DNA from: Chlorokybus atmophyticus
Taxonomy: Eukaryota; Plantae; Mesostigma and Chlorokybus algae
Reading direction: 5' to 3'
Length of the DNA: 64,000 bases
NCBI GenBank assembly: GCA_009103225.1
Contig: RHPI01001116.1
Coordinates: 1-64,000 of the forward strand
This document shows positions 1-62,490 of the stretch, piece after piece. The notes beneath the pieces are model-generated. The model did not search any database, had not been told where the DNA came from, and saw only the letters and a list, made by a program, of their open reading frames with translations. A program made the position numbers and the translations under genes. Position 1 is the stretch's first letter, and every line of letters begins with the position of its first letter.

Positions 1-60
1 AACAAGCACCACTCTGTTGTTGTTGCATGTCAGCAAAACCAACTCCCCTATCCCCAGGCA

Positions 61-1243
61 CAGGTAACGGGTCGTGGTGGCGTTTACTCCAGCTGCGCCA
101 GAGTGCGATGTCAAATGCAGACACGGATGAAGTTATTGTTGCTGTGGTGGTTGTCGTCATGGCGTGGTGTATGTTAGGGATGAGGGCGATGCCAGGAGGA
201 TAGCGGGCCTGCTCGACGCCTTGGGACAGCAAGTCAGAGGGGTGGAGGTTGTTGACAGGTGTGTGTCACACGGCCTGCACGCACTAGCACGCACGTGAAC
301 AGGCACACACGCGCGCACACATTCACGCACGCGCAGACAGACCCACACATGCGCACACACGCGCGCGCACATGCACGCGCACGCGCACGCTCATACACAC
401 ACTCTCCTGCACACAGCAGGAGGCTAGTAACTCATTTCTCCACACCAAACTCCTCACACAGGCTCTGCCAGCCGTCCATCCAATCCTTCATCGACGACAC
501 CTCTCCGCTTCGTTGGTGGGGAGGAGCGCGTCAACGATGCGAATCCCTTGTCAATCCCAACGACGTGGTCATCCATTGTGTGCTTCACGGACGTGCAGTG
601 GTACAAGCAACAGCGTGGTGTGCGTGTTGAGTTGCGAGACACGTGTTGCTCTTCTTATTCTTGTTGTTAGTCGTGGGGGGCGCAGGTGACAACAACAGCA
701 ACAAGTGTGAACATACAACTCAATAGCGGCTGGGTGGAGGCCATGGTGGCTGCGCACTCAAACAGCAAAACAAACACAACATTCTTCGATGTGGTCATCG
801 CTGGCATGACCATCTCAGCTGGAGACTCGATCATCAGCGGTTACCACGACTTCTACGGACACTCAACGCGAGGTACGTCGTTGCTCATGCGTTATGCGGT
901 ATGCACCCCGATCGTACCCAACACATCTCCAACATGCACGCAGGTCGGACCCGTTCGCCAACGCCCACATCCTCTACGGCCCCATCTGCACCCTCTCTCT
1001 GTCTCTCCCTCCCTCCCCACACACACACATCCCCTCTCTCCCCCTCTTCGCCGATTGTTACCGAGAGGGCGTGCTGGGAGGACATCGAGTGGTGCATGGC
1101 ACTGCGTACGTCTGCGCGCACATACAGTGCAACTACTACTGCGCGCGGGGGCGGGTACACCACACTGTTTTGTATCCATGCAGTCAGTCGTTGAGCATGA
1201 GTTTGAGGAGGCTGTGCTGGGGCTGTTTGTGAGTATATGGTAA
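61..1243 (+). pseudogene. Degenerate multi-exon gene 'X1' of unknown function, paralog of X2 (10089-11660); weak FIST-C-like resemblance
   Basis: Exon-like blocks between CA-rich introns: LLDALGQQVRGVEVVDR, SFIDDTSPLRWW, ISAGDSIISGYHDFYG, DPFANAHILYGP, VEHEFEEAVLGLF. They recur as diverged paralogs at 10300-11650. Frames do not join cleanly, and the family guess comes only from recalled motif order. Confidence 0.4.
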
Positions 1244-1344
1244 AGTTAATCATAACGAAACACTCTTTGCCAATCTCAACTACTCTGCGTACACACACAC
1301 ACACACACACACACAGACACACACGCACGCACGCACGCACATCT

Positions 1345-1560
1345 CTCACCTCCCTCCAAAAGTCCATGACTTTCGTCACCGCCGCCCTCACTCTCCCCTC
1401 CTCCACAATGCTCCTCACCGCCTCGATGAACAACCTTTGCAATCTCCACGCCATGGATTGATGGTTTGCGGCGGCGGCGGCGGCGGCGGCGGCGGGCAAA
1501 GTTTTGGGATGGACAGCTCGGCGGTCGAGCTGGTCTTCCGGAAAGAGGTATGCTTCTGTT
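1345..1560 (-). pseudogene. 3' exon remnant of an MDR/zinc-ADH-like paralog
   Basis: Minus-strand IVEEGRVRAAVTKVMDFWRE followed by a GTGAG donor is homologous to LVEEGRIKPAVTRVMDFWRE at about 12860-12930. Confidence 0.7.
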
Positions 1561-1718
1561 TTCACAGTCCACTGCGCCGCGTTGTGCTCGGCTGCTCTGC
1601 TTCAAACCACTGACTGCAGGCTTGTAGTTGGATACCCTCACTAGTATCACTTCGACTTGGTGCTGTGCTGCTGCAGCACCGCTGGTGGTGGTGGTGACTC
1701 GAGGCTTGCCGTGGATTC

Positions 1719-4700
1719 ATGGCTGCACAGCAAGCAACTCGGGAAGAAGGTTACGACGTGTTTCTCTGTCATCGGGGTCCGGACACAAAGAGGACATTCA
1801 GCGCATGGCTGAACCGCGAGCTTAAGAAGCAGAAGCTGCGGGTGTTCTTCGACGACAGGATACTCTGTATGGGAGATCTTTCTTCTGTGGAAATGGACTC
1901 AGCCATGCGAACGGCGAAATGCGGCATCGTGGTGTTGTCTCCGCAGTTCTTTGAGAGCTACTGGTGCATGAAGGAGCTGCGAGTGTTTCTGGATCGAGGA
2001 AACTGCATGCCAGCCTGTTACCATATCACTCCTGATGACATAGATGCAGAGGCGATCAAGAACAAGAAAGGTATACCGATTATTCACGGGGATAAACAAG
2101 TCGGTCCTCAAGTCTGTTTGTCATGCGTATGTGTGTCTATGCTTGCAGTAGGTACAGCCTGGGAGCATCACGGGGGGCAGCTGTGGACAAAATGCGGCAT
2201 GAATGAAGCGGACTGGACGCAAGTGATTTGTGAGCTCGCGGTTGTATGCATGGACGTTATGTCAAAACATGACAATTACGAGGACACCTATGTGGATTCG
2301 ATTGTGCAAAAAGTTTGCAAGAGGCTCAGACGAGTCTGCACAACAGGAAAGAGAGTCAACACGGTGCCATATCGTGACAAAAAGCTCTTCATTGGAAGGA
2401 GCCAAGAGATGACAGAGCTGAAGAACATGCTGAAAGATGAATGTGGCTGTGTCTGCATCCAAGGCATGGGGGGTTCCGGCAAGACGCACCTGGCGTTGAA
2501 GTACGCTTATAGCCATAAAAACCAATACGACAAACTGCTCTGGATTGCCGCCAGCAAAGACTTGTTGCAGGTTAACTTCCTTGGGTTGGCAGCTCCGCTG
2601 GGCATCAGCCTAGGCGCTGTCGACACCGGGTAAGAGCGTTTGCTAGCTTTGAGCAAGATTATGATGCTTATGTAAACTGTTAATGTGGTACGCTTGGTAA
2701 AGACCCTTTCATGACAGGTCTGGGACGATGCATTCGAGTGTGCGGGACCCGAACCGAGATGGTGTATTGACGATCCGGACAGCGCTTGAACAGTCTGAAA
2801 CCCCTTGTCTCCTGGTGTTAGACAACGTGGATGACGAGCATCAGTATCCGGGATACCTGCCGCGGGAAGGCCCTTGCCATGTCATACTGACTGCCCGTCA
2901 GCGTATGTATTCAACCAGCCAAGGCCTCCTGGAGCTGAAGAACCTTGAAGAGACGTATGCGTGTCAATTGCTCAAATCGGGTTTGCCGCCAGAGACTCCC
3001 GATGCAAAGGTCAAGGAGCTGGCTGTGGCTCTAGGGTGCCATGCTTTATCCCTATCAGTTTCTGCTAAGCTGATGCATGAGTATGGGAGCGGCCCGGAGT
3101 GGGTCTTGAACCTGCTTGACACTGAAGGTGTTGAGATCTTCAACCAGGAACTGGATGACCCCGAATTCCAAATTAGCCCGCGTCTAACAACTTTGTTTGC
3201 TACGAGTATGGAGATGATGTTGAGTGACGCCAGACATCCACCTCAGGCAGTTGCTTTGGCCAGAATCGTGTTGAGATTGGGTGGATGGTTTGCTGCAGCT
3301 CCAATACGGTTGGACCTATTGAAACAGGCTGCCTGTACATTGCTGGCGAAGGATGTTAGCATTGATAATATCCACGTTGCGGCTGGACTGCTCAACAAGT
3401 ATGCATTAGCGGAGCGGACTCTTGACGCAGGGATAGCTTTCCACCCTCTGGTGCAGAGTTTTGGCAGATGGGATGGCAAGAAAGAGGGAGTCCAGATCGC
3501 CCAGGCTGCGGTTCTGGCTATCGCTGAAGTCGGCGAGGTTGGACAAGACACGGAACACTTTGCGTATGCAGTGTCCATGGCTTTGCCGGAGGGTGGTGAC
3601 CCCAGCGGGATCAAGGTTCCGCTAGATGCGGACTATTTGCAGCGGGTCATTGACGTTGCACTGGCATTAGCGAGTTTTTATATTGACCTCTATGAGACAA
3701 CAAAGGCTTGGAATATCTTGCACAGATGTGAACGCATCTTGCAGCAAGTTGAATGTCAAGACATGACACTTTTGCCACATCTGTGGACTTTGCAAGGCGC
3801 TTGCTTGACACGCGAGGGCAGGTACGGCAAGGCTGAGGCCCTGCACAGACGGGCACTGGCGATTCGCGAAGCGCAGCTGGGATCGGACCACCCCAACACC
3901 GCGACGTCCCTCAACAACCTGGCATCTGTCCTCTACCAGCTGGGCAAGCACGACGACGCTGAGGCCCTGCACAGACGGGCACTGACAATTTGGGAAGCGA
4001 AGCTGGGATCAAACCACCCCGACACCGCGACGTCTCTCAGCAACCTGGCATCTGTCCTGTGCGATCTGGGCAAGCTCGACGACGCTGAGGCCCTGCACAG
4101 ACGGGCACTGGCAATTCACGAAGCGAAGCTGGGATCGGACCACCCCGACACCGTGACGTCCCTCAACAACCTGGCATTTGTCCTGTGCAAGCTGGGCAAG
4201 CTCGACGACGCTGAGGCCCTGCACAGACGGGCACTGGCGATTCGCGAAGCGCAGCTGGGATCGGACCACCCCGACACCGCGACGTCCCTCAACAACCTGG
4301 CATTTGTCCTGTGCGAGCTGGGCAAGCTCGACGACGCTGAGGCCCTGCACAGACGGGCACTGGCATTTTGCGAAGCGCAGCTGGGATCGGACCACCCCAA
4401 CACCGCGAGGTCCCTCAACAACCTGGCATCTGTCCTCGACCAGCTGGGCAAGCTCGACGACGCTGAGGCCCTGCACAGACGGGCACTGGCTATTTTGGAA
4501 GCGAAGCTGGGATCAGACCACCCCAACACCGCGACGTCCCTCGACAACCTGGCACAAGTCGTGTGCGAGCTGGGCAAGCACGACGACGCTGAGGCCCTGC
4601 ACAGACGGGCACTGGCGATTCGCGAAGCGCAGCTGGGATCGGACCACCCCGACACCGCGACGTCCCTCAACAACCTGGCATCTGTCCTCTGCGAGCTGGG

Positions 4701-7700
4701 CAAGCTTGACGACGCTGAGGCCCTGCACAGACGGGCACTGGCTATTCTGGAAGCGAAGCTGGGGTCGGACCACCCCAACACCGCGACGTCCCTCGACAAC
4801 CTGGCACAAGTCGTGTGCGAGCTGGGCAAGCTCGACGACGCTGAGGCCCTGCACAGACGGGCACTGGCGATTCGCGAAGCGCAGCTGGGATCGGACCACC
4901 CCGACACCGCGACGTCCCTCAACAGCCTGGCATCTGTCCTCTGCGAGCTGGGCAAGCTTGACGACGCTGAGGCCCTGCACAGACGGGCACTGGCTATTCT
5001 GGAAGCGAAGCTGGGGTCGGACCACCCCAACACCGCGACGTCCCTCGACAACCTGGCACAAGTCGTGTGCGAGCTGGGCAAGCTCGACGACGCTGAGGCC
5101 CTGCACAGACGGGCACTGGCGATTTGGGAAGCGAAGCTGGGATCGGACCACCCCGACACCGCGACGTCCCTCAACAGCCTGGCATCTGTCCTCTGCGAGC
5201 TGGGCAAGCTCGACGACGCTGAGGCCCTGCACAGACGGGCACTGGCTATTCTGGAAGCGAAGCTGGGGTCGGACCACCCCAAGACCGCGACGTCCCTCGA
5301 CAACCTGGCACAAGTCGTGTGCGAGCTGGGCAAGCTCGACGACGCTGAGGCCCTGCACAGACGGGCACTGGCGATTCGCGAAGCGCAGCTGGGATCGGAC
5401 CACCCCGACACCGCGACGTCCCTCAACAGCCTGGCATCTGTCCTCTGCGAGCTGGGCAAGCTTGACGACGCTGAGGCCCTGCACAGACGGGCACTGGCTA
5501 TTCTGGAAGCGAAGCTGGGGTCGGACCACCCCAAGACCGCGACGTCCCTCGACAACCTGGCACAAGTCGTGTGCGAGCTGGGCAAGCTCGACGACGCTGA
5601 GGCCCTGCACAGACGGGCACTGGCGATTCGCGAAGCGCAGCTGGGATCGGACCACCCCGACACCGCGACGTCCCTCAACAGCCTGGCATCTGTCCTCTGC
5701 GAGCTGGGCAAGCTTGACGACGCTGAGGCCCTGCACAGACGGGCACTGGCTATTCTGGAAGCGAAGCTGGGGTCGGACCACCCCAAGACCGCGACGTCCC
5801 TCGACAACCTGGCACAAGTCGTGTGCGAGCTGGGCAAGCTCGACGACGCTGAGGCCCTGCACAGACGGGCACTGGCGATTCGCGAAGCGCAGCTGGGATC
5901 GGACCACCCCGACACCGCGACGTCCCTCAACAGCCTGGCATCTGTCCTCTGCGAGCTGGGCAAGCTTGACGACGCTGAGGCCCTGCACAGACGGGCACTG
6001 GCTATTCGGGAAGCGAAGCTGGGATCGGACCACCCCAACACCGCGACGTCCCTCGACAACCTGGCACAAGTCGTGTGCGAGCTGGGCAAGCTCGACGACG
6101 CTGAGGCCCTGCACAGACGGGCACTGGCGATTCGCGAAGCGCAGCTGGGATCGGACCACCCCGACACCGCGACGTCCCTCAACAGCCTGGCATCTGTCCT
6201 CTGCGAGCTGGGCAAGCTTGACGACGCTGAGGCCCTGCACAGACGGGCACTGGCTATTCTGGAAGCGAAGCTGGGGTCGGACCACCCCAAGACCGCGACG
6301 TCCCTCGACAACCTGGCATAAGTCCTGTGCAAGCTGGGCAAGCTCGACGACGCTGAGGCCCTGCACAGACGGGCACTGGCGATTCGCGAAGCGCAGCTGG
6401 GATCGGACCACCCCGACACCGCGACGTCCCTCAACAGCCTGGCATCTGTCCTCTGCGAGCTGGGCAAGCTTGACGACGCTGAGGCCCTGCACAGACGGGC
6501 ACTGGCTATTCGGGAAGCGAAGCTGGGGTCGGACCACCCCAACACCGCGACGTCCCTCGACAACCTGGCACAAGTCGTGTGCGAGCTGGGCAAGCACGAC
6601 GACGCTGAGGCCCTGCACAGACGGGCACTGGCGATTCGCGAAGCGCAGCTGGGATCGGACCACCCCGACACCGCGACGTCCCTCAACAGCCTGGCATCTG
6701 TCCTCTGCGAGCTGGGCAAGCTTGACGACGCTGAGGCCCTGCACAGACGGGCACTGGCTATTCGGGAAGCGAAGCTGGGGTCGGACCACCCCAACACCGC
6801 GACGTCCCTCGACAACCTGGCACAAGTCGTGTGCGAGCTGGGCAAGCACGACGACGCTGAGGCCCTGCACAGACGGGCACTGGCGATTCGCGAAGCGCAG
6901 CTGGGATCGGACCACCCCGACACCGCGACGTCCCTCAACAGCCTGGCATCTGTCCTCTGCGAGCTGGGCAAGCTTGACGACGCTGAGGCCCTGCACAGAC
7001 GGGCACTGGCTATTCTGGAAGCGAAGCTGGGGTCGGACCACCCCAAGACCGCGACGTCCCTCGACAACCTGGCACAAGTCGTGTGCGAGCTGGGCAAGCT
7101 CGACGACGCTGAGGCCCTGCACAGACGGGCACTGGCGATTCGCGAAGCGCAGCTGGGATCGGACCACCCCGACACCGCGACGTCCCTCAACAGCCTGGCA
7201 TCTGTCCTCTGCGAGCTGGGCAAGCTTGACGACGCTGAGGCCCTGCACAGACGGGCACTGGCTATTCTGGAAGCGAAGCTGGGGTCGGACCACCCCAAGA
7301 CCGCGACGTCCCTCGACAACCTGGCACAAGTCGTGTGCGAGCTGGGCAAGCTCGACGACGCTGAGGCCCTGCACAGACGGGCACTGGCGATTCGCGAAGC
7401 GCAGCTGGGATCGGACCACCCCGACACCGCGACGTCCCTCAACAGCCTGGCATCTGTCCTCTGCGAGCTGGGCAAGCTTGACGACGCTGAGGCCCTGCAC
7501 AGACGGGCACTGGCTATTCTGGAAGCGAAGCTGGGGTCGGACCACCCCAAGACCGCGACGTCCCTCGACAACCTGGCACAAGTCGTGTGCGAGCTGGGCA
7601 AGCTCGACGACGCTGAGGCCCTGCACAGACGGGCACTGGCGATTCGCGAAGCGCAGCTGGGATCGGACCACCCCGACACCGCGACGTCCCTCAACAGCCT

Positions 7701-8901
7701 GGCATCTGTCCTCTGCGAGCTGGGCAAGCTTGACGACGCTGAGGCCCTGCACAGACGGGCACTGGCTATTCGGGAAGCGAAGCTGGGATCGGACCACCCC
7801 AACACCGCGACGTCCCTCGACAACCTGGCACAAGTCGTGTGCGAGCTGGGCAAGCACGACGACGCTGAGGCCCTGCACAGACGGGCACTGGCGATTCGCG
7901 AAGCGCAGCTGGGATCGGACCACCCCGACACCGCGACGTCCCTCAACAGCCTGGCATCTGTCCTCTGCGAGCTGGGCAAGCTTGACGACGCTGAGGCCCT
8001 GCACAGACGGGCACTGGCTATTCTGGAAGCGAAGCTGGGGTCGGACCACCCCAAGACCGCGACGTCCCTCGACAACCTGGCACAAGTCGTGTGCGAGCTG
8101 GGCAAGCTCGACGACGCTGAGGCCCTGCACAGACGGGCACTGGCGATTCGCGAAGCGCAGCTGGGATCGGACCACCCCGACACCGCGACGTCCCTCAACA
8201 GCCTGGCATCTGTCCTCTGCGAGCTGGGCAAGCTTGACGACGCTGAGGCCCTGCACAGACGGGCACTGGCTATTCTGGAAGCGAAGCTGGGGTCGGACCA
8301 CCCCAAGACCGCGACGTCCCTCGACAACCTGGCACAAGTCGTGTGCGAGCTGGGCAAGCACGACGACGCTGAGGCCCTGCACAGACGGGCACTGGCGATT
8401 CGGGAAGCGAAGCTGGGATTGGACCACCCCGACACCGCGACGTCCCTCAACAACCTGGCATCTGTCCTCTACGAGCTGGGCAAGCTGGACGACGCTAAGG
8501 CCCTGTACAGACGGGCACTGGCTATTCGGGAAGCGAAGCTGGGATCAGACCACTACAACACAGCGACGTCCCTCAACAACCTGGCATTTGTCCTGTGCAA
8601 GCTGGGCAAGCACGACGACGCTGAGGCCCTGCACAGACGGGCACTGGCGATTCGCGAAGCGCAGCTGGGATCGGACCACCCCGACACCGTGAAGTCCCTC
8701 AACAACCTGGCATCTGTCCTCTACGAGCTGGGCAAGCTGGACGACGCTGAGGCCCTGTACAGACGGGCACTGGCTATTCGGGAAGCGAAGCTGGGATCGG
8801 ACCACCCCAACACCGCGAGGTCCCGCCGCAACCTGGCACGCGTGCTCGGCGATCTGGGCAAGCACGACGACGCTGAGGCCCTGCGCAGACGGAACAGTTG
8901 A
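1719..8901 (+). CDS. TIR-NB-ARC-TPR NLR-like protein, copy A, with 40 TPR units. An in-frame TAA at 6319-6321 truncates it to about 1504 aa (2364 aa if read through).
   Basis: TIR: YDVFLCHRGPDTK...SPQFFESYWCMKEL. P-loop GMGGSGKT, Walker B LLVLDNVDD, sensor-1-like VILTARQ, MHD-like FHPLVQ. Intron 2630-2717 (GTAAGA...GACAG, phase 2) joins the two ORFs in frame. Possible stop-free 81-bp intron at 2071-2151. Confidence 0.93.
3832..8871 (+). repeat. Coding tandem array of 40 x 126-bp units encoding 42-aa kinesin-light-chain-type TPRs
   Basis: gctgaggccctg recurs at 3832, 3958 ... 8872, a span of exactly 40 x 126 with no net indel. Consensus AEALHRRALAIxEAxLGSDHPxTAxSLxxLAxVxxxLGKxDD. Confidence 0.97.
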
Positions 8902-8999
8902 ACACCCCCAACTAAGATACACCTAGGTTAGGAGTAAAGTTGAACACCCCCAACCCTGCGTAAACACTAAGATGTGGGCGCTGTGCATTACGACTCTGG

Positions 9000-9420
9000 G
9001 CTAGGATTGTTCAGTAGCCTGACCTGCTGCTGCCTTGTTCTCTTTCTCGCAGCACAACCCAAGGCTGGCTTCACTCTCTTAGGCCTGAGCTCAGGTCCGT
9101 CCAAGCATCGACAGTGGCATCAGGGGCCACGCATCCATCAAACAAAAGACTTACGTACGTGATGATGTGCCTTCAAAGGCTCTGCCACACAGGTGTGCTG
9201 AGTTGAAGGCATGTGCTGTGCGATGTGATGGAGTCGCACGGTGTTACATGGTGCTGAAACCGCTTTTGGTTTGCGCCCAATTCGCTTTTCAAGCAGTGCT
9301 TGCAAACGAGCCGTGCCGGCTGCCTGCGTCTATCGTAATTGAATATATGAAATATTGCAATAGACGCTGTTGATTGGGACGTAAGCATTGCTCGTGGAAG
9401 CGGTACATGCAGCATATGTT
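9000..9420. repeat. Block homologous to the region upstream of the MDR/ADH-like gene (about 15010-15390); also at about 26730-27080 and 32070-32450
   Basis: Shared cagcacaacccaaggctgg...ggcctgagctcaggtccgtc...ggggccacgcatccatcaaacaaa...cgtacgtgatgatgtgcc. Confidence 0.85.
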
Positions 9421-10088
9421 ACAACCACACACATAGGGCATTGGGTCTTTGGACGGAGAGTTACAGTGTAGTTCTGTTCGCAGATTGCCTCAGGTTGCTG
9501 TGATGTTGGGGGCCAGGTTGAGGCCTGCGGTTTTTGTAGTCAAACACTTGGCTGTTTGACTTGAAAGCAGGGAGCTCTTTTGGGACGTTGCCTTGAGATG
9601 TGTCGTGGCGTTGTGATAGTTGTGTAGTGAGTGACTCACCCTTTGCGCTTTTAGAAGATGATACATTACTTGTGTGTGTGTGTGTGTGTGTGACAAATGA
9701 GACATGAGTACAGTAGCAGTGACGGTTTTCCACGTCATGGGCCATTAACGCCACTGTCAGCTGTCACAAGCGTTGCCCTACCAGCAGCGGCAGTGTGAGA
9801 GGCGGGCCATGCCTGCGTATGAGGTACGCTTGCTCGTACGTTGTACACTGTACATATACGCTCCGAGTACTGTCTATATGAGCGTAGATTATATACACTC
9901 TACTGTGCATAGCGTGCAATACATGCGCTGTGTGTAGCACACTGTCGCGTGCAGGGGTGTTCACCAAAGATGGTAAACCGAGCAGCGGTAGCAAAGAGTT
10001 CTCGACCTTGCTGGTTGTCGTTGTTGCTTGCATGTGTGATATCCACTTGCAACAACAACAACAACAACAATTGTCCCCAACAATACTG

Positions 10089-11660
10089 ATGACGTCGTTG
10101 TCAGCGGCAACGGCATCAGCACGCGTGGCCGCTGCGGCGCGCGTGAGAGAGAGAGACGCGCAACACCATCAGCCTGCAAGGTAAGTCAGTGTGCGTGTGC
10201 GTGTGCGTGTGCGTGTGCGTGTGTCTCGCGTATCAGCGCGCACCACTCCGTTGAAAACATGAGCAAAATCACACTCCCCCTATTCCCATGCACAGGTATC
10301 AGGTGGTGGCTTGTCCTCCAGCTCCTTTCCCTCACACTGCGTCCTGCGTGCTCGGCTACACTCGCGGCCTGTACGAGGCCGTAAAACCCTGCGTCTCAGC
10401 GGCAGTCACACAGCCTCAGAACGCTGCTTTTCTTGATGCTCCGCCTCGAGTGCGATGTCGACGCAGACGCAAACACGGAGAAAGGGGTTGTGTTGGTGGT
10501 GGCGGTTGCCGTGCCGGGGGGCGATGCTAGGAGCGTAGGGTGCCTGCTAGACGCCTTGGGACCGCAAGCAAGAGGCGGGGTTATTTGTGGCAAGCATGTC
10601 ATCTGTGACAATCATGCACACACATTCACTGTGTGTGCGCGCATGTTTACACGCGCATCCGCATCCGCTTGCGCTCATACGCAAACACGCGCATGCACAC
10701 ACACACACGGTAACGTGCACACGCGCGCGCATGCGCATGCACACACGCACACACTCTCTCGCCCAGAGCAGACGCTAACAACCCATCATGCCATCGCTTC
10801 CATCCCACACGGACATCGCAGCCCTCCGTCATCTTTCTCATCGACGATGCCTCTCCATTTCGCTTGTGGTGTCGCCACGACGGCGTGACCCCTCATCATT
10901 CCTCACAACACCAATGTGGTCATACTCTTTCACCAGTGAAATCGCAACCCGGCCGCAGCGCGCAACAGCGGTCTGGTGCATGCGTGGGTTAAGTATGCTG
11001 CGGCCATCATGTGCTTCACGGGCGAGGACTGCCGGCCGCAGCGGTAATACAGCATTAGCATATTGTGCTGGAAATGCAAGACACATGCTGTTGCTGTTTG
11101 TGGGGTAAAAGGTCACAACAACAACAACAACATGTGTGAACATACAACGATAGCGGCTGGGTGGAGGCCATGGTGACGGTGCACTCGAACAGCAAACAAA
11201 CACACAAACAAACAACAAAATGGTCATGGCTGGCATGACCGTCTCAGCTGGAGACTTGATCATCTACGGTTACCACGACTTCTACGGGACACTCAACGCA
11301 AAGTACGTCGTCACGTATTGGTATGCACCCTAACCCCAACACGCACGCAACATGTACGCAGGTTAGACCCGTTCGCCAACGCCCACATCCTCTACGGCCC
11401 CAACCTGCACCCTCTCCCTCTCTCCCTCCCTCCCCACACACACAAACCCTCTCTCCCCCTCTTCTCGACGAGAGCGTTAGCCGCGAGGCCTCATGGGACG
11501 CATCACGTGGTGCGCGGCACTGCGTGCGTCTGCGCGCGCACGGGCGGGGTACACCATTGTGTTTTGTGGCGATGCGGTCGTCGAGCATGAGGTTGAGGAG
11601 TCTGTTACGGGGTTGTTTGCGCTGTTTGGTGAGTATGGACGGTGGCAGGAGAGGGCGTTT
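10089..11660 (+). pseudogene. Degenerate multi-exon gene 'X2' of unknown function, copy A
   Basis: A/S/R-rich first exon MTSLSAATASARVAAAA ending at a strong AAG|GTAAGT donor (10181). Later exons: VPGGDARSVGCLLDALGPQARG, GYHDFYG, DPFANAHILYGP, VVEHEVEESVTGLFALFGEYG. Confidence 0.4.
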
Positions 11661-12590
11661 GGAGTGTATGCGGGGTGAAGGGAAAGGAGTTTGGGCGGGT
11701 CACAATAGGTCATGTTGGTGATGAATGAGAAGAGAGTGCTGCCGGCGTGAGTACGTGTGAAGATAGGTGGATGTTTAGACTCTTCTTGCGCACGTGTGCA
11801 GGCTGTTGAGGGAGTCTTGCGTTGATGAAGTATGTCTGTTTGAACACGTCCAGCACCAACGCACTGGCACAGCAAGAGCGTGGACAAGCCTGCGATGCAG
11901 CTGTTGGGTGAAAGCACAATGTTCTTAACATGACATCATATTTGCATACAACCTGCTACTTTGCTTCGTACTCCTCGGCACTGCGCATGTCCAAAGGGTA
12001 CCTTTTACGCTAACTCCCATACGCATTGGCTATTAGGAAACAAAACACTACTATGCACGAATGTACATACAATGCGCGTGGCATATGCTCATGCATACTG
12101 ACAATCACCATCCCACAAGCACACCACTCACATTTCACGCTACCACGTAGTTCACCCGTGTACAAGTGTTAACCGCCCTGGTTTTGTGTATGTACAAATA
12201 ATGCGAAACGGAAATGCACATGCATAGTGTGCTCTGCCGGGATCGCAAATGGGATCGCAAACTGTGCTTGCATGCAAACGTTATATATACTCACTGTACA
12301 TGGTATGTGCAGCGTACTGTGCTCCTCTACCTCACACGGTCATGCACACACCCTCACGAGTCTGCTTGCGTGCAAATGGACTTGTGCAAGGCCAGAATCA
12401 ACACATAATTGTTGTTGTTGTCGCACAAATCACAGCTTTGCAAGTACCAGTGATGAGGCTCCCCCATCAAGCATAGCCACACTTGTGCTCGGGAAACACA
12501 ACAGCAGGTGTTTGGCAGACAACAAGATGTACATGCACTCGACTAAGGGTGGGTGTATTATCTGATCTCGGTCATTTCTTCGTCTCTTCT

Positions 12591-14787
12591 TCAGTCCTTG
12601 CGCACCACTAGGACGATCTTCCCGAGCGTCTCACGCTTCGCCACCGTCCCGTGCGCCTCCGGCAACTCCAACCCATAGAAAAAGATGTCAAGTCGCAGCA
12701 AGATAGACTACGTGCTTCTGCGTGCGCGGGTGCGCGCGCGCGTGTAAGCACGCATGAACATCAGCACACACGCAAGCGCGCGTGTATATATCGAGCTGTG
12801 TGTGCATATCTGTGTGCATGCTGATACACCCACTCCACCCCACCCCACTCCTCACCTCCCTCCAGAAGTCCATGACCCTCGTGACCGCTGGCTTGATCCT
12901 CCCTTCCTCCACCAGCCGTCGCAGTTTTCTTGTCCAGAATCACCCCCTGCCTCGCCTGTCCCAGTCCCCCGTCACCGCCCGCAGGAACACGGACTCGAAG
13001 GTTAAACGCCTGGCGCTTGCGGAAGAGGGCGGAGACGTCCGCAGGGTTAGTGCGGTTCAGGACGCTGAGGATGCAGAGCAAGCGGGTGTTTGTTCAAATT
13101 AGTGCAGGCCTGGCATGCGAGTGTTTTCTTGCGTGTGAGAGCGCGCTCGCGTGTGTGCTCGTGCGCGTGAGCGTGCCGTGCCACACCTCACCAAACTGTA
13201 TCACTGTCGCATTTCAAAAACCACACGCACGCATCTCATCCTGCAACGTGACTGTGAAGACACTCGCTTGACAATCCCCCCGAAGGCGTTCATCGCCCCA
13301 ACAGCGTCCTCCAAGATCTCAACCGGGTTCCCCGTGTTCAGGACATGATCCGACCTGCCGTTGACGGCGTCTCGCAGCTGCGGCGCCAGAGGACGCTTGT
13401 CGTTGATCACGGAGTCGGCATCGAACTTGCGAGCGAAAGACTCGCTCTCGGGACGAGAGGCCGTCGCGACCACGTGGTAGTTGAGGACCTTTGTGTGCGT
13501 ACGTGCGTGTGCATGTTTGCAAGGGTATGTGTGCGCGCAGGTTTGCGTAGGCGTCGTATGCTTCATGCGCGCGCTCGCAAAATACAGACATGTTTGCATG
13601 CATGAAAGCGTGCTGCCTGCATGCTCACACATGACAGAAGTTGGTACATGCACACACATGCATCTCTACTGCTGTCCATATGGGTGGGGCACATGCACGT
13701 GTGTCCACAGCTACAAGTTGGCCTTACCTGCTTCATGAGTTGTATGGCGATGGGTCCCAACGCCACCAGCGCCACCGATGACAAGTCCAATCGGTTGCGG
13801 AGGGACTTCATCATCGTATTCCGGCACGGGCTTGGCTTCATATGGTTCTGAACAGAGACGGATACTAAGTCATCGTGTTGTCGTTTCAGAAAGCATTGTC
13901 GAAAGACACAGCAGGGATACAAACACTAAGTACCTGCGTGCAGCTGTTCAAAGAGCGCTTCCCATGAAGTCAGCGACACCAGAGGCAGGGGCGGCCGCCT
14001 CCTCAAAGCTGAGGTTGCTAGGCTTGTGCCCGACAATACGCTCATCTACGGCCGTGTACTCCGCATTCTGCAGCACACAGAGTGTCACACATCCCAACAT
14101 AGTGATTGTGTGTAACAACATATTCCAACTTGCTGAGCCCTGGCTTGTGGGAGTGCCGGCAAAGTAGATGTCGTCACCGCGTTGGAACTTCCTGACATCC
14201 TTGCCGACGTCCTCCACGACGCCAGCGCAGTCGTACCCCCGAGCACGCGCACCTGCTCGCCCTCGGGGGGACTGCATGCACATGTTAGTTCTTACTGATG
14301 ATGACCAGCAGAACACACACACACACACACACATCCTCTCTCTTACGGTGCCGCGCAGCATACCGTCGACGGGGTTGACGGACACGGCGTGCACACGCAC
14401 GAGGAGGTCGCGGGGGTGGAGGTGGGGGAGGGGAAGATCAACCACCTGGAGGTTGCTAGCCTTGTTCTCGCCTGCGTGCGTGTGTAAGGGATTGTTGTTG
14501 TTGTTCAGACTAGAGAGACGGAGATGAACGCGTTGCCTGAGACAGCACAATGCTTGCGTGCATGCATGCATGCACGCAACTACTACAAAGATTACGAAGG
14601 TCAGGTGAAGCCAAGTAGCATAGCACGGCCTCCATGCAAACCTGTTGTGAGCACTCGTAAAGGTTGGATGCAGACAAGTATACAGCAGGTATACTGCAAT
14701 GCCACCATATGTGCAAGCTCACACGTGCCCATGCAGACACACATGCACATGCAGGCACACAGCACCTTTGAGGACGAAGGCTTTCAT
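12591..14787 (-). pseudogene. Medium-chain dehydrogenase/reductase (zinc-type ADH-like, quinone-oxidoreductase-like), copy A, frameshifted
   Basis: MKAFVLK; RDLLVRVHAVSVNPVD; GYDCAGVVEDVG; NAEYTAVDERIVGHKPSNLSFEEAAA(LP); LPEAHGTVAKRETLGKIV. There are 1-bp indels in C/G runs at about 13990, 13755-13805 and 12930-13005. Confidence 0.85.
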
Positions 14788-21274: not shown

Positions 21275-21989
21275 GGCCGCTGCCAGGCATGAATGAAGCG
21301 GTGCAACACATGCAAAGCGATAGCATGCATGTCGCTGAGACTGGCGAGGACACTGGGCCAAGCCAAGCCAAAACCCAGGCCTAGGCCTAGGCCTGGGCCT
21401 AGGCTTGGCCTGGCTTGGCTTGCGGAGTCACTGGCACGAACTCTGTGCAGTGGACACGTGTGCGTAGGCAGAGAAGTTGAGTTGATTGCACTGTTTGTGT
21501 GTGTGAGAAAGGCGGGGATGCGTGCGTTGGAGGTACGAGAGCGTACATTACGCGCTCGCTCACATATATAACCCGCTGTATACACGCTGCATGTTGTGTC
21601 AGCTAGCGTATTGTGTACGCTCTACAGAGTACAGTACATGCACGAACACGAACGAAGCCGATCGGCATACTGTTCCATATGCCTGGGATCAAAGGATAAT
21701 GAGCAGCGGAAGCAAAGGAGCTTGTTGGTTTTGGTGGTGGTTTTCTGGTCGTCGTTGTTGCACGTGTTTCCGCATGCAACACAACGACAACAGATTCAGG
21801 TGCCTGCTTGCTACCGCTGCTGCTCCCACCCCCTTCCCAGAGACGCGCGACACAATTGGGTTGCATAGTGAGACGACGAGTACAGTACAGTGTGTGTGCG
21901 CGTGTGAGTGCATATGTGTGAGTATCAACCAACAAGCACCACTCTGTTGTTGTTGCATGTCAGCAAAACCAACTCCCCTATCCCCAGGC

Positions 21990-23018
21990 ACAGGTAACGG
22001 GTCGTGGTGGCGTTTGCTCCAGCTGCGCCAGAGTGCGATGTCGAATGCAGACGCGGATGAAGTTGTTGCTGTGGTGGTTGTCGTCGTGGCGTGGTGTATG
22101 TTAGGGATGAGGGCGATGCCAGGAGGATAGCGGGCCTGCTCGACGCCTTGGGACAGCAAGTCAGAGGGGTGGAGGTTGTTGACAGGTTTGTGTCATACGG
22201 CCTGAACGCACTAGCACGCACGTGAACAGGCACACACGCGCGCACACATTCACGCACGCGCAGACAGACCCACACATGCGCACACACGCGCGCGCACATA
22301 CACACACTCTCCTGCACACAGCAAGAGGCTAGTAACTCATTTCTCCACATCAAACTCCTCACACAGGCTCTGCCAGCCGTCCATCCAATCCTTTATCGAC
22401 GACACCGCTCCGCTTCGTTGGTGGGGACGAGCGCGTCAACGATGCGAATCCCTTGTCAATCCCAACGACGTGGTCATCCATTGTGTGCTTCACGGACGTG
22501 CAGGCGTACAAGCAACAGCGTGGTGTGTTGATATGCGAGACACGTGCTGCTCTTCTTATTCTTGTTGTTAGTCGTGGGGGCGGAGGTCACAACAACAGCA
22601 ACAAGTGTGAACATACAACTCAATAGCGGCTTGGTGGAGGCCATGGTGGCTGCGCACTCAAACAGCAATACAAACACAACATTCTTCGAAGTGGTCATTG
22701 CTGGCATGACCATCTCAGCTGGAGACTCGATCATCAGCGGTTACCACGACTTCTACGGACACTCAACGCGAGGTACGTCGTCGCTCATGCGTCATGCGGT
22801 ATGCACCCCGATCGTAACGGGTCGTGGTGGCGTTTGCTCCAGCTGCGCCAGAGTGCGATGTCAAATGCAGACACGGATGAAGTTATTGTTGCTGTGGTGG
22901 TTGTCGTCGTGGCGTGGTGTATGTTAGGGATGAGGGCGATGCCAGGAGGATAGCGGGCCTGCTCGACGCCTTGGGACAGCAAGTCAGAGGGGTGGAGGTT
23001 GTTGACAGGTGTGTGTCA
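21990..23018 (+). pseudogene. Gene X1, copy B, with an internal duplication of its first visible exon
   Basis: Homologous to 61-915. Bases 22815-23018 repeat the ...gggtcgtggtggcgtttgctcc... exon and end at an N (23019). Confidence 0.4.
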
Positions 23019-23353
23019 NTCCCCCTGCTCCACGATCCTCCTCACCGCCTCGATGATCAACCTTTGCAATCTCCACGCCATGGATTGATGGTTTGCTGCT
23101 GCGGCGGCGGCGGCGGCGGCGGCGGCGGGCAAAGTTTTGGGATGGACAGCTCGGCGGTCGAGCTGGTCTTCCGGAAAGAGGTATGCTTTTGTTTTCACAG
23201 TCCACTGCGCTGCGTTGTGCTCGGTTGCTCTGCTTCAAACCACTGACTGCAGGCTTGTAGTTGGATACCCTCACTAGTATCACTTCGACTTGCTGTGCTG
23301 TGCTGCTGCAGCACCGCTGGTGGTGGTGGTGACTCGAGGCTTGCTGTGGATTC

Positions 23354-43075: not shown

Positions 43076-46000
43076 CTAGCCTTGCCGGGCCTTCTTCCTG
43101 GTGCGCGGCTTGTGAGCATCGTCCTCACTTTCACTGTGATGCGTAATGTCTTCATCTTCGCTCTCATGCTCCTTCTCAGCATCGCCGTTGCCCTTGTACG
43201 CATCATTGGCGGCCCTCAGGGCTTCTTGCAATCCTTCCGGCTCACGATGCTCGCGTGCAGCCTGCCATTGCTTTGCATCAGCACACTTACACAACTGCAT
43301 ACATGCTGCTTGAGATCCTGCTAGCAACACCTTATATGCTTCTGCCATGACGCCCATGTTGTGTTTCATGGCGGCCTTGTGGTCCACAACGGGGGCGGGG
43401 TAGTCCTTGCCGATTATGCAGTTGGCTTTCTTCTGCACCTCAAGCGGGGCCGTCCACGGCTCATAGATATACGCACTGGGCATGTCGCACAGAGCCGGGA
43501 TGTACTTGCGGATGAACTTCCCGCCCTGGGCAGCAAAGAGAGAACTGCTTTGGCAAACAGATGGTGGCCCAACACCACGTGCACAAGTAACAAGGCGAAC
43601 ACACACTAGCAATGCCATATTGCAGCCACGAAAGTAGCACACCTTGTCGTATTTGCGCCCGAATGAGATGGGAGAGTAGACTCGTTGGAACTGGTGAAAG
43701 AAGGCGCTGGCGCTAAGCCATAGCCAATTGCCGTTGTTGATGCTCCAGTCGGCATCAAGCAAGTAGTGTTCAAACACGTCCCTCCCTAGCTCCCAGCTAA
43801 TCAACAGGTCCCCTCTGGTGAGGAAGCACGCCACGGCATGGCGCGCGAGATGATGCATCCAGCCTTCCGTCTTCAACTGTATCATGATGGCATCTATCCA
43901 AGGGTAGCCTGCGTGCAAGTTGAAGCAGTATTAGTAACTGAATATCAAACATGCTTCACTAGCTTGCAGGTCACCTGTTCGGCCTTCAGCCCATAGGTTG
44001 CTGAGACTCTTGTCATAGTTCCAAGGCACCTGCAGCAGAGCTTACTTTCGTTCTTTCTTGTCAACTGAACGTGCATGCAATCTACATTGATTACATTGGG
44101 AAGCAGCGTGAAGCGTATGTGTATATACGTGCAAATGTGTATAAAATGCAGATGACTTGCTGGAGTGGATGTGTGGCAGGCCTGGTCACCTGTTTGCACA
44201 GGGCATTGCCCTCCATGGCGTCAAAATGCTTCGTGTTATAACCAACAGTGTAGAAGAACTCCCGCCAGTAGAGCTGCCCAAGAAGAGACACTGGGGGCTG
44301 AGTCGTGCGCGGCCCAATGGCACGAAGTTTGATGTAGAAAAGGCGCGCAGAGACACACCTGCACGCCAGGCACCCCCCGCACTGTTAGAGACAGTCAACG
44401 TGCGCTAGACAGCAATATATCAGTGTCGCACAGTGGTATTGGTAATACTCTGCAAGTGAGCGCGCGGATGTGCAACGCTCAAGTGCTTGTGCATGTGTGT
44501 GCATCCGTGCATGTGTGTGCCTGCATGTGCGCGCCTGTGCGAATGTGCCCTCGCGTAAGCACATAAGATCAATGACTGAACCACTTTCGTTGCTAGCCAC
44601 CCTAACAATCAGTTGAAAATCTCCAACATGCAAACACATACAGCGCGTGGGACAAGGACATAAGGTACGGGCACAAGTGGGCCTCACCCAAACATAAGGT
44701 AAGGCGAAAGCACAGTTGTCCCCGGCGGTTCAAAGGCACTCGGATCCGTCTTAGGCTTCTCAAACTTGGCGACCCACTCTTTCTTGCTCATGTACTCGTC
44801 CAGCCTTAGCAACCCCTCAACCTCGCCCCCGGGAACTCTGCACGGCCCCAACTCCTCATGACCAAACTCGGTCACCGACGAGGGCGGCTCAGTCTGTTCC
44901 AAAGCAAAGGCACCCAAGGGACCCATCGCAGGGAGCTTGCCTAAACAGAAAAATGTCGAATGCTACAAGGGTATGCGCGCACACATGTGTGTGTATGAAT
45001 GCCTGTGCGCGTGCATGCGTGTGCCTGTGCATGTGTGTGTGTGCGTGTATGAGTGCCTGCATGTGCGTGTGTGGGTGTTAAACACAGTGTTAGTGATCAA
45101 TTGCTCTTGGATCTTTGTGCTAACCTGGGGCTGCCAGGGGCTCAGGAGGCGGGCCCATACGCGCGAGCATCTTCACGAAAGGGCCATATGATGCTGGTGC
45201 CTTGCCACCCGCCTGTGCAAACAAGATGGCAACTGATGACACCAGTTGCAAGCACGACAGTTGGTTCAATACCAACATATTGTGGCAATCACTCTGCTGC
45301 GTGTATGTACCGCTGCAATGGTGTCATCTGGATTGTAAAGCAAACAGCTGTCTTTCGCAACCACTTGCACGCCCTTTTTCTCCGCTATGTCCTGCGAGAC
45401 GAGTGTGAAGGATGTTCCACACTGTGCTGTGCTTACTGTGCAGCACACCAAGCAGCAACCCCAACATGATTACCATGCCTGTATGTGCTGGTCGCGCTCC
45501 CGCGCATGCGGCTCGTACGCCCTCTCGTAGCAGAGCTTTTTCACCTTCCACTCATCAAACACTCGTGGGAACACCTGATATTGGAAAGCAACAAACTCAT
45601 TCGCCTTCAGTATGGCAGATGTGCAAGCAGCAATGACAACGAGTACCTCGCGGGGGTTGCCACGTAGTACGACCAAGCGTGTCCCATGCGCGCGAAGGGA
45701 CTTGTCCAAATCTTGTAACGACTGAAACAGGAAGCGCAGTCGAGTCGGCCCACACCGAGCGCCTGGCTTGCATCTAGTCATAACAGGAGAAAGGGTTGAG
45801 AACTCTGGGTGAGTGCTGCTGTTGCTATTAAGCAGAACACGCTCAGGTGTATGCAAGCACCATGACCACTGCTTCTTGCATTGCACAAGGTGCTTCAGCT
45901 GCAGCATGTGATGTGATGCATTGTTTGATTCCGTCAACAAGCAAGGGGATTTGCTTTCGTAAGCAACGAACTCCGTTGCAAGGCAAGACCAGCCTTTAAA

Positions 46001-46274
46001 AGCACACTTTTCCGCGCCACGCGTCCAACTCTGGCTTCGTAAAACATTCAAGAAATAACAACAACGCAAACAAGTCAACAAAGAAAGTAACAGTAGCGCA
46101 AGGCTCAGCTGGCTTGCTGCCATGCAAGCTCCACCTGGACGGGTCCAGCACAAAGACCGGGTACAGCGGGCCTCCATCCTGCGCTGCCGCCAGCAGCGCC
46201 GGATTGTCGTGCAGCCTCAGACCACGCCTGAACCAGAACACCACTGCCGCCGTCGCCCCCGCCGTCGCCGACAT
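43076..46274 (-). CDS. UVR3: (6-4) photolyase / animal-like cryptochrome family protein
   Basis: [15 protein letters not shown]; [13 protein letters not shown]; [14 protein letters not shown]; [12 protein letters not shown]; [35 protein letters not shown]; [17 protein letters not shown]; IYEPWTAP...IGKDYPAP. Confidence 0.93.
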
Positions 46275-61061: not shown

Positions 61062-62490
61062 TGTCACGGACGACTGAATAATAACGCCACAATGGCCGCA
61101 AAACACACTTCGTGCATTTGTGGCCTAGTGGTTTGTTACAATGGTAACGGAGCTTGACGTTTCAGGTTCAATTCCCGTAGGGGACTGAGGCAGATCCAAG
61201 GCAAAAACAAAACATTTGGGGCGGCTTGCCCTAGGCTGGGCGCTGTCACGAATTGGGATTATTTGTGACAGACCTCGCTCATGGTAGTGTCTTTTGCTAC
61301 CATAGCCTAGTGGTCGGGCCCCAATTGTTTCAATGATATTGGAGCTTGACGTCTCAGGTTTAATTCCCGTAGGGGACTGAGGCAGATCCAAGGCAAAAAC
61401 AAAAACATTTGGGGCGGCTTGCCCTAGGCTGGGCGCGGGATCACGACCTGCGCGCCGAGCCAGTTCAACCTAAGGCCGCGTGAGCGGTTGCGCTGCGATG
61501 GCAGGTTGCGCGGTGAGGATGGCCGTTTAGTCGGTCAGGACCGTTCATGGGCCGAATCCAACAGGCCGCAGGCAGACCGATCGTGGTACGGCCGCAAACA
61601 CGGCGACGTGGGCTAGTGCCTCATTGGATTATGAGGAACTCATGGGTTAAATTGGGGAGGAATGTCACGAATTGGGATAAATTGTGACAGACCTCACTCA
61701 TGGTAGTGTCTTTTGCTACCATAGCCTAGTGGTCGGGCCTCAATTGTTTCAGGCGCGGGATCACGACCTGCGCGCTGAGCCGATTCAACCTAAGGCCGCT
61801 TGAGCGGTCGCGCTGCGATGGCAGGTCGCGCGGTGAGGATGGTCGTTCGGTCATTCAGAACCGTTCGTGGGCCGGATCCAACAGGCCGCGTGCAGACCGA
61901 TCGTGGTACGATCGCGAACACGGCGACGTGGGCTAGTGCCTCATTGGATTATGAGGAACTCATGGGTTAAATTGGGGAGGAATGTCACAAATGGGGATAA
62001 ATTGTGACAGACTTCACTCATGGTAGTGTCTTTTACTACCATAGCCTAGTGGTCGGGCCCCAATTGTTACAATGGTATTGGAGCTTGAGACCGAAAACGT
62101 CCTGAGATCGAAACCGCCTAGCGGCGGTAGACCTAGAAGGATTTTTGAGGTTGTTGTTATCGATTCATGAAGGGTTGCGCGTCAATGCGCGACTTGCCGG
62201 ACGGCAGTCGGACATTCTGACGCGTCGCGCGTACCTGGAGCCGCCGCTGGGTAGTACCGCGCGACTTGCCTGACAACGGCTGACAATCGGTCACTCAGCG
62301 GCGCAATGCGCGCTGCGACCGCTCAGTGATATTTGCAAAAAGTTACACTGCTCAGTGACGAGAAGCTCTGTAAAAACTCACATGAGGACATTAGATACCT
62401 AAGTGGGGGGAATGTCACGGACGACTAAATAATAACGCCACAATGGCCACAAAGCACACTTCGTGCTTTGTGGCCTAGTGGTTTGTTACA
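61062..62490 (+). mobile_element. Chimeric tandem TRIM chain: LTR-79 (61062-61140), internal I, LTR-89 (61983-62071), internal II, LTR-78 (62413-62490)
   Basis: PBS TGGTAACGGAGC (61142) and TGGTATTGGAGC (62073) follow the LTR ...TTACA ends. Purine tracts TGGGGAGGAA and AAGTGGGGGGAA precede the TGTCAC starts. Confidence 0.85.
61244..61751 (+). mobile_element. Complete 508-bp TRIM nested in a copy of its own family; LTRs 61244-61332 and 61663-61751; TSD GGCGC
   Basis: 89-bp LTRs (TG...CA), a PBS-like tgatattggagc, a PPT, and GGCGC at 61239-61243 and 61752-61756. Confidence 0.92.

Follow-up and report, generated by a model that had tools for sequence, protein, structure and literature searches.

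Among the TIR proteins of land plants, TNPs (formerly XTNX) are the most widespread, which lends interest to the sensor hallmarks of an algal relative. Grasses and liverworts have no TIR-NLRs and carry TNPs only. Where the family arose is disputed: it has been described as "originating in algae", versus the report that Klebsormidium and Chara have no orthologues (the latter in PMC9806590). Published surveys list TIR-bearing NLR-like genes in Chlorokybus, and the TNP-type gene family of this alga is as such not new; our literature search found no publication on the repeat arrays of these Chlorokybus genes or naming their Chlat1 identifiers. Fungal NLRs with high internal conservation (HIC) are defined by repeats sharing more than 85% identity across 100 residues or more (Dyrka 2014; Ament-Velasquez 2026). 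Here, we describe gene 1, located at 1719-8901 on the forward strand of a 64,000-nucleotide stretch of the Chlorokybus atmophyticus genome (the window; contig RHPI01001116.1, positions 1 to 64,000). Gene 1 is a TIR-NB-ARC-TPR (TNP-type) NLR-like gene of this early-branching streptophyte green alga and has three exons. It is probably one of a young tandem pair of TNP-type STAND/NLR-like genes, with a TPR sensor array that diversifies by repeat exchange, and the same process would also have produced an in-frame TAA at a hypervariable codon of the array (codon 32 of unit 20).

A 304-codon open reading frame (ORF) starts at ATG 1719 on the plus strand, and two ORFs in another frame, 2728-6321 and 6577-8901, form according to their translation a single frame (2718-8901) broken by one stop. 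The introns were first predicted from the sequence and then compared with contigs of four public runs (X1 to X4) and with the paralog protein P0001. Because intron 1 is in frame, the raw ORF continues through it. The spliced frame comprises 2,338 codons, of which codon 1479 (6319-6321) is the internal TAA. The features of the locus are the following:

1719-2070, plus strand: exon 1, with the start codon and the N-terminal part of the TIR (ORF and Pfam TIR_2/TIR; 3' limit from the spliced joint in X3 and X4 contigs and from P0001)
1974-1976, plus strand: codon for Glu86 of WCMKEL, the putative NADase catalytic Glu (gap-free alignment to Roq1 residues 9-92)
2071-2148, plus strand: intron 1, 78 nt, GT..AG, in frame (78 nt skipped by X3 and X4 joints; not in P0001)
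2149-2629, plus strand: exon 2, with the end of the TIR, a linker and the start of the NB-ARC with P-loop GMGGSGKT at 2463-2486 (Pfam NB-ARC/AAA_16 and motif coordinates)
2630-2717, plus strand: intron 2, 88 nt, GT..AG, frame-shifting (88 nt skipped by X3 and X4 joints; the junction AVDTG/SGTM matches P0001)
2718-3831, plus strand: exon 3 before the array, with Walker B (2809-2835), ILTAR (2884-2898), GCHALSL (3034-3054), FHP (3439-3453) and a helical linker with capping helices (translation and motif search)
3832-8871, plus strand: TPR array of 40 tandem 126-bp units, each one 42-residue TPR of the kinesin light chain (KLC) type (Tandem Repeats Finder, unit table, Pfam TPR_10/TPR_12, PDB sequence matches and AlphaFold2 model)
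4462-8367, plus strand: higher-order repeat of units 6-36, alternating B and A, with a 252-bp period and 15.5 dimers (97% at period 252 in Tandem Repeats Finder; unit i against i+2 mostly 0 differences)
6226-6351, plus strand: unit 20, a mosaic B-type unit (unit haplotype table)
6319-6321, plus strand: in-frame TAA at hypervariable codon 32 of unit 20 (ORF list, translation and unit table)
8872-8901, plus strand: partial 41st unit AEALRRRNS (9 codons) and terminal TGA, in a frame common with the paralog (C-terminus identical in P0001 and P0002)
1882-2865, plus strand: 984-bp tract identical to 23517-24500 of the paralog, covering both introns (pairwise comparison)
23354-26630, plus strand: gene 2, the intact tandem paralog with 9 TPR units (matches the annotated Chlat1 Chrsp35S05191, P0001)

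The domain order and motifs bear out the NLR-like TIR-NB-ARC-TPR architecture that a first-pass annotation, made from the letters alone, had proposed. The N-terminus of the product matches Pfam TIR_2 (2.5e-15) and TIR (5e-14), and aligns without gaps to plant TIR structures, with Glu86 in the column of Roq1 E86, where the Glu of WCLDEL is also found in AtTIR and RPV1, in agreement with the TIR carrying the Glu of WCMKEL in that annotation. For the NB-ARC, the TNP motif set was compared (Walker A, RNBS-B TTR, Walker B, GLPL and MHD). The annotated P-loop (2463-2486) and Walker B (LLVLDNVDD, 2809-2835) were confirmed; at the other motifs, the sequence has TAR (in ILTAR) for TTR, the GLPL-like GCHALSL, and the MHD-like FHP. 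The Pfam NB-ARC match spans just the first 60 profile positions and lies in exon 2. As to its relatives, the closest proteins are all from JGI Chlat1 (C. atmophyticus). An exhaustive HMMER search with TIR and NB-ARC listed Chlorokybus paralogs first, then metagenomic TIR-NBARC-TPR proteins at 39% identity, and in the next tier land-plant TIR and NB-ARC proteins of Marchantia, Riccia, Diphasiastrum, Adiantum, Ceratopteris, Physcomitrium, orchids, and panicoid grasses, these proteins being 28-33% identical along either the TIR or the NB-ARC stretch (E 1e-30 to 1e-51). Since grasses and liverworts keep just TNPs, these land-plant relatives appear to be of the TNP type, which fits the family of Johanndrees et al. 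(PMC9806590).

The array itself was described by Tandem Repeats Finder as a 126-bp unit repeated 40.2 times at 88% identity, and as a 252-bp unit repeated 20.1 times at 97% identity. Cutting it every 126 bp gave 40 in-frame units with zero indels and a 9-codon tail, so that the 40 units of 126 bp in one exon, as first annotated, were recovered at 3832-8871 with no intervening sequence. Pfam TPR_12 and TPR_10 matches across the array are very strong, and the best solved relatives of the repeat are KLC1 and KLC2 (E 2e-45, ~40% identity), followed by the 42-residue repeat protein of P. anserina (4y6c/4y6w). An AlphaFold2 model of the linker and units 1-8 reached a predicted local distance difference test (pLDDT) score of 86 and matched KLC TPR folds with a target-normalised TM-score (TMt) of up to 0.85; in this model, helices precede unit 1.

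Units 1-5 and 37-40 each differ from the others, and units 6-36, i.e., 31 of the 40, alternate strictly, B type then A type. In B-type units, residue 12 is Leu or Arg, residue 28 is Asp, residue 32 is Gln, and residue 34 is Val; in A-type units, residue 12 is Arg, residues 28-29 are Asn-Ser, and residue 32 is Ser. A single A-type sequence occurs 13 times in nucleotide-identical form. At the nucleotide level, A units are 99.5% identical to one another and B units 98.1%, against 88.7% between the two types. Overall, the array contains 20 distinct units at the nucleotide level and 19 at the protein level, with a mean pairwise identity of 87% (protein) and 92% (nucleotide) over 1,680 residues; for the terminal units alone the mean is 82%. 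Thus, the repeats are highly identical, as had been noted in the first-pass annotation, which had missed that 31 of them form a two-unit A/B repeat. Since these 31 units constitute a very young 252-bp higher-order repeat, most of the apparent variation is the A/B alternation. The comparison shows that they arose very recently, by amplification of a single two-unit block. Three long ORFs overlap the array in another frame or on the minus strand (4178-8692 plus, 4116-8453 minus, and 4513-8427 minus, with 1,504, 1,445, and 1,304 codons). They were rejected as genes, as the repeat unit lacks stops in those frames.

How this array evolves can be read from its paralogs. P0001 (Chlat1 Chrsp35S05191, 1,036 aa) is 100% identical over 755 residues to ORF 24363-26627, which is most of gene 2 exon 3, and it fits the splice junctions predicted for exons 1-2 of gene 2. 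Both TNP genes and ~3 kb downstream of each lie in a tandem segmental duplication (1-12000 versus 21931-29666) with flanks that are 94-96% identical; in the first copy, collinearity breaks down around 917-1387. In the coding sequence before the array, genes 1 and 2 differ at 30 of 1,947 sites (98.5% identical; dS 0.033, dN 0.011, omega 0.33), and the omega value indicates past purifying selection on both genes. All 30 fall in the flanking 1,129 bp and none in 1882-2865. With the flanks diverged by ~2.7%, this 984-bp stretch would be expected to contain ~26 differences, and its identity points to a recent gene-conversion tract.

The number of TPR units is 40 in gene 1, 9 in gene 2, and 6 in P0002, a protein that is 89% identical over part of the NB-ARC; here, paralogs serve as a surrogate for individuals in assessing repeat number. 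Exact look-ups in the gene-position index gave no entry for P0002 or for the 1,197-aa ORF of gene 1. The amplified block is a dimer in gene 1, and the duplication in gene 2 is in trimer register. Within gene 2 (25845-26600), unit 5 equals unit 8 (0 differences), units 4 and 7 differ by 2, and units 6 and 9 by 13. A single nucleotide separates the A-type unit of gene 1 from units 4 and 7 of gene 2. In P0003 (Chlat1 Chrsp5S06988), a more distant paralog, residues 943-1190 comprise, after diverged units, three near-identical A/B dimers of 42-residue TPRs, and this C-terminal (AB)x3 block is an independent dimer amplification in the TNP-type family. The TPRs of P0004, P0005, and the metagenomic relatives are of the usual diverged kind. 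The unit counts of 6, 9, and 40, the 984-bp tract, and the mosaic unit 20 together indicate ongoing unequal crossing-over and gene conversion, showing that this is an HIC array that evolves by these two processes. The module shuffling suggested in the first-pass annotation is therefore backed by the paralog counts, the dimer and trimer amplifications, the mosaic unit and the conversion tract, although the 40-unit array is mostly a monotonous A/B series.

Evidence for transcription came from contigs of the RNA-type public runs X3 and X4, in which both introns of gene 1 are skipped exactly by GT..AG joints. In the X3 contigs, 7 of the 8 diagnostic sites in 2866-3124 and 9 of the 11 in 3423-3811 have the gene-1 base, and gene-1 bases in spliced contigs indicate that gene 1, or a very close allele, is transcribed and correctly spliced. 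This evidence covers the 5' part of the gene, as the contigs are uninformative on the extent of the transcript through the array. The lack of a transcript, which the first-pass annotation had named as a result that would speak against its reading, was thus not what we found for the 5' half. One X3 contig contains an extra GT..AG joint (2230-2346), which skips 117 nt (39 codons, in frame) in exon 2, has a low depth and is anchored by just 29 nt at one end, and which could be either a minor isoform or an artefact of the contig. A spliced X4 contig of 2,078 nt (1700-3894) deviates by ~1.8% from gene 1, mostly not towards gene-2 bases, and lacks 5 nt at 2749, resulting in a frameshift, so that it represents either another strain or species, or a third, broken but transcribed paralog. 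An X1 contig (1891-3212) shows gene-2 bases at 2904-3124 and gene-1 bases at 2866 and 3026, and at position 2904 all four runs show the base of the paralog instead of that of the window. Either conversion mosaics differ between strains or these short-read contigs are chimeric.

The in-frame TAA in unit 20 was missed in the first-pass annotation. This stop leaves 1,478 of the 2,338 codons, and as assembled the product would have 1,478 residues and 19.7 TPRs. Compared to the common B unit, unit 20 shows three nucleotide differences within 13 bp (unit columns 94, 100, and 106), all of which agree with units 3 and 38 (TTT GTC CTG TGC AAG at this place). Columns 95-96 of unit 20 are still those of a B unit, so that codon 32 takes its T from the Phe codon TTT and its AA from the Gln codon CAA and becomes TAA. 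Three clustered changes that match one other unit type argue for a short, patchy conversion tract instead of independent mutations, and we infer that unit 20 is a conversion mosaic. The cost of such a mechanism is that recombination of two sense codons (TTT and CAA) at a hypervariable position can make a stop. Removal of the stop by an intron was considered unlikely, as there is no GT directly 5' of the TAA and no array-internal joint in the contigs.

The stop, and perhaps the exact copy number, might also be an artefact of assembly or polishing, in which case the real gene would have an open frame of 2,338 codons and ~40 TPRs. Arrays with 97-100% identical units are error-prone in assembly, the TAA is the sole lesion in the 5,040 bp of the array, and the contigs of the four runs deviate from the window, as in the case of position 2904. 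However, mixed reads would keep either TTT or CAA together, so that a T-A-A mosaic in three adjacent bases is unlikely to arise from them, and unit 20 has two more donor-type bases, 4 and 10 bp downstream, making up a coherent conversion patch. The B-type variants also follow one another non-periodically along the array, as in real long-read sequence. Contigs of X1, X2, and X3 placed in the unit 20 bin have no difference listed, which is suggestive only: contigs fitting many units were placed once, and no contig piece spanning unit 20 is listed in the four public runs. Taken together, we consider an artefact unlikely.

Taken as assembled, gene 1 is either a receptor of 1,478 aa with ~20 TPRs followed by 20 silent units, or a just-formed pseudogene. 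None of the array units contains an ATG codon, so units 21-40 are not translatable on their own. According to the second possibility, gene 1 would be a freshly dead duplicate that lost constraint after the duplication, after which the A/B dimer expanded neutrally by slippage or unequal crossing-over and conversion introduced a genuine nonsense codon. The distribution of variable sites would then be a legacy of functional ancestors and carry no information on the present function. The TAA itself and the 31 near-identical units without new diversity are in line with this, as is the array length, which far exceeds the 6-9 units of the nearest paralogs and the fungal maximum of 21. Moreover, the closest protein returned was the intact P0001, and none of the candidates of 660-2,095 residues (only the 8,000 sharing most words were scored) was identical to gene 1. 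What speaks against a dead gene is that transcripts of its 5' half are correctly spliced and carry gene-1-specific bases, and that the coding sequence before the array shows an omega of 0.33 and no further lesion. In addition, the stop lies in the last exon and leaves a TIR-NB-ARC-TPR(20) protein of 1,478 aa, and because 20 TPRs exceed the repeat number of the intact paralogs, the truncation need not inactivate the product. A dead duplicate seems somewhat unlikely to us.

To describe the variation among units, we pooled the 28 distinct units of gene 1 and the 9-unit gene 2. Minimal state changes comprised 39 nonsynonymous (75%) and 13 synonymous changes, for 92 and 34 sites, respectively, giving an omega-like ratio of 1.1. 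Since the neutral expectation is 73%, the "mostly non-synonymous" changes that had been taken as a signal in the first-pass annotation are what neutrality predicts, and whole-unit dN/dS, being ~1, was rejected as evidence of positive selection. Amino acid variation is concentrated at unit residues 12, 15, 22, 25, 28, 32, 35, 36, and 40, and nonsynonymous changes are over-dispersed over codons (variance P=0.004, top-9 sum P=0.013), which is not the case for synonymous changes (P=0.36). Seven codons have three or more amino acid states (12, 22, 25, 28, 32, 35, and 36), and when the six units of P0002 are added, residue 32 reaches eight states and residue 12 six. The nine clustered residues agree with the roughly ten variable positions on a near-invariant scaffold listed before, but three of the listed states (Thr at 28, Thr at 32, and Arg at 35) occur only in the paralog at 23354-26630.

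Magliery and Regan described TPR positions 2, 5, 9, 12, 13, 33, and 34 as hypervariable, concave, and ligand-contacting. The variable sites were mapped by canonical numbering, using a Pfam TPR_1 alignment in which TPR position 1 is unit residue 24, and by DSSP helix limits. Residues 25, 28, 32, 35, and 36 correspond to TPR positions 2, 5, 9, 12, and 13, and residue 15 to position 34, so five of the seven codons with three or more states are positions 2, 5, 9, 12, and 13 (P=5e-4). The a priori concave set of seven codons takes 19 of the 39 nonsynonymous and none of the 13 synonymous changes (binomial 4e-6, Fisher 9e-4). According to DSSP, residues 21-36 of the AlphaFold2 model form helix A, which places residues 22, 25, 28/29, 32, and 35/36 in an i, i+3/4 pattern on one helical face. 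The variable sites had been expected in the concave groove, and canonical TPR numbering indeed puts them on the predicted ligand face.

For a site test, a GY+F3X4 tree of the 28 units was made with IQ-TREE, and models M0, M1a, and M2a were run with our own code, which reproduced the M0 likelihood of IQ-TREE. M0 gave an omega of 0.85, and M2a was favored over M1a (likelihood ratio test statistic 20.3, P=4e-5; omega2=6.3 for 6% of sites), with posteriors above 0.99 for codons 12 and 32, a result that is supportive and not proof, because recombination and multi-nucleotide differences can inflate it. The per-codon dN/dS check suggested earlier thus yielded clustered changes and two codons that pass a site test, but not a whole-unit dN/dS above 1. 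Change is focused on the helix-A TPR positions 2, 5, 9, 12, and 13 and on residue 12 of helix B, and this focus on the predicted ligand face suggests that either diversifying selection or relaxed constraint acts there. Together with the high internal conservation and the swings in copy number, the groove-focused variation points to the TPR groove as the ligand site.

Relaxed constraint would fit a gene 1 protein that is a TNP-type STAND ATPase in a housekeeping or stress role, with a variable TPR face that is merely tolerant. Among land-plant TIR proteins, TNPs are the most conserved, their mutants have no clear immune phenotype (PMC9806590), and a whole-unit omega of ~1 is compatible with this. 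However, TPR domains of such proteins rarely show 87% internal identity, copy swings of 6, 9, and 40, and up to eight states at a groove position, and these traits are hallmarks of fungal HIC NLRs tied to non-self recognition. A housekeeping role is, in our view, quite improbable.

The preferred reading, a sensor array that diversifies by exchange, can be extended to a mechanism by homology. The architecture and catalytic residues support a predicted STAND/NLR-like switch with a TIR output, as in TNPs and TIR-NLRs. The C-terminal solenoid of KLC-type 42-residue TPRs would be the sensor, a ligand in its concave groove would release the NB-ARC switch, oligomerisation would bring the TIR domains together, and a Glu86-dependent NADase or nucleotide-processing activity would signal or kill the cell, without EDS1. 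The TIR from a Chlorokybus protein has been reported to trigger cell death in N. benthamiana, and the maize TNP TIR kills without requiring EDS1 and needs its Glu (Johanndrees 2022, PMC9806590). By analogy, gene 1 may function in immunity or allorecognition.

Several observations weigh against this reading. The reading frame is broken at 6319-6321, with units 21-40 downstream of the break, and the central 31 units are nearly without diversity, unlike a diversified sensor, so that they could reflect a neutral runaway expansion. Array length and stop rest on the assembly, and the four public runs consist of short-read contigs. The prior-free clustering tests on minimal state counts are just moderately significant (P=0.004-0.013), whole-unit omega is ~0.85-1, and the site test uses a tree of recombining 126-bp units and codons with multi-nucleotide differences, both of which inflate omega. 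Finally, land-plant tnp mutants have no clear immune defect (PMC9806590).

If the preferred reading holds, the data suggest that NLR-like receptors at the base of the plant lineage already diversified rapidly through their repeats, or came to do so by convergence. A far-reaching version, which we regard as very improbable, is that Chlorokybus runs a fungal-style rapid diversification on TNPs, with reshuffled modules, selection on the groove, and the 20 silent units as a linked donor store for gene 1 and its paralog, the land-plant TNPs being frozen remnants of a hypervariable family. What is specific to gene 1 is its 40-unit size, the clean dimer higher-order repeat, the 9-versus-40 tandem pair with a conversion tract, and the nonsense codon at a hypervariable position. 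Two tandem copies that are 98.5% identical before the array and have 9 versus 40 repeats form a compact natural experiment.

Elsewhere in the window, a photolyase/cryptochrome gene is located at 43079-46177 on the minus strand (FAD_binding_7 1e-53, DNA_photolyase 3e-16), an alcohol-dehydrogenase-like ORF at 13951-14571 on the minus strand (ADH_N 1e-8), and a 320-bp tandem repeat with two copies at 92% identity at 61432-62068.

Cargo peptides of KLC sit in the concave TPR groove. The KLC TPR domain (KLC1/KLC2; 7ai4, 3zfw, and 6swu) is the closest solved fold and sequence for the gene 1 repeat, and the matched KLC entries bind cargo peptides. KLC differs in having 6 diverged TPRs and a coiled coil at the N-terminus and in lacking an NTPase or TIR, and the resemblance is limited to the repeat type.

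The brown-algal NB-ARC-TPR genes, which the first-pass annotation had put forward as a parallel, are a less fitting comparison. According to Zambounis 2012 (PMC3341825), the Ectocarpus family shares an NB-ARC with 42-residue TPR modules, clustering, birth and death, modules inactivated by stop codons, and a claim of positive selection on some modules. Each 42-aa module of Ectocarpus is its own phase-0 exon and shuffling occurs at the exon level, whereas the 40 units of gene 1 are contiguous in one exon and exchange takes place inside coding DNA, by unequal crossing-over or conversion; no TIR is described for the Ectocarpus family in the passages considered, and the lineage is stramenopile instead of streptophyte. 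A brown-algal origin or Ectocarpus-type exon shuffling was rejected, as the related proteins are Chlat1 proteins and the array is one exon, and the parallel fails because the gene is related to land-plant TNPs and the exon-per-repeat layout is not present.

Land-plant TNPs (ZmTNP-IIa and the Marchantia TNP; PMC9806590) have the same domain order, the catalytic Glu in the TIR, and a P-loop and Walker B, and, like the gene 1 family, TNPs occur in lineages without EDS1. C-terminal TPRs in place of LRRs, a feature of TNPs, are present in gene 1 as 40 TPR_10/TPR_12 units. However, land-plant TNPs are low-copy and conserved and have long N-terminal extensions, whereas the Chlorokybus clade shows canonical TPR_10/12 units, tandem duplication, and homogenised arrays; in the five relatives scanned (one of them metagenomic), the C-terminal repeats were too degenerate for the Pfam TPR models at 1e-5.

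The closest match in array behavior is with the fungal HIC NLRs, as the first-pass annotation had supposed. These combine an NB-ARC with 42-residue KLC-type TPRs of more than 85% internal identity, have variable residues on the concave side, and exchange repeats within and between genes. Gene 1 has the same effector, NB-ARC, and repeat architecture, 87% identity over 1,680 residues, and repeat exchange. It also shows a few hypervariable positions on the predicted binding surface, like those under diversifying selection in HIC repeats, and the site test would fit such selection, with the reservation that the data are small, the units recombine, and the face is predicted. Fungal HIC TPR arrays favor even repeat numbers and A/B alternation, as in gene 1, and repeat number varies between close copies in both fungal HIC NLRs and the Chlorokybus genes. 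They differ in that gene 1 has a plant-type TIR at the N-terminus instead of HET, sesB, PFD, or PNP_UDP, a streptophyte host, no repeat-induced point mutation (RIP) context, and 40 units, more than the maximum of 21 quoted for fungal TPR NLRs. In Podospora, the defining population evidence is polymorphism among individuals, and for gene 1 the comparison is made between paralogs. Gene 1 shows the fungal HIC NLR pattern in an algal relative of plant TNPs, and is thus of a known kind in a new lineage.

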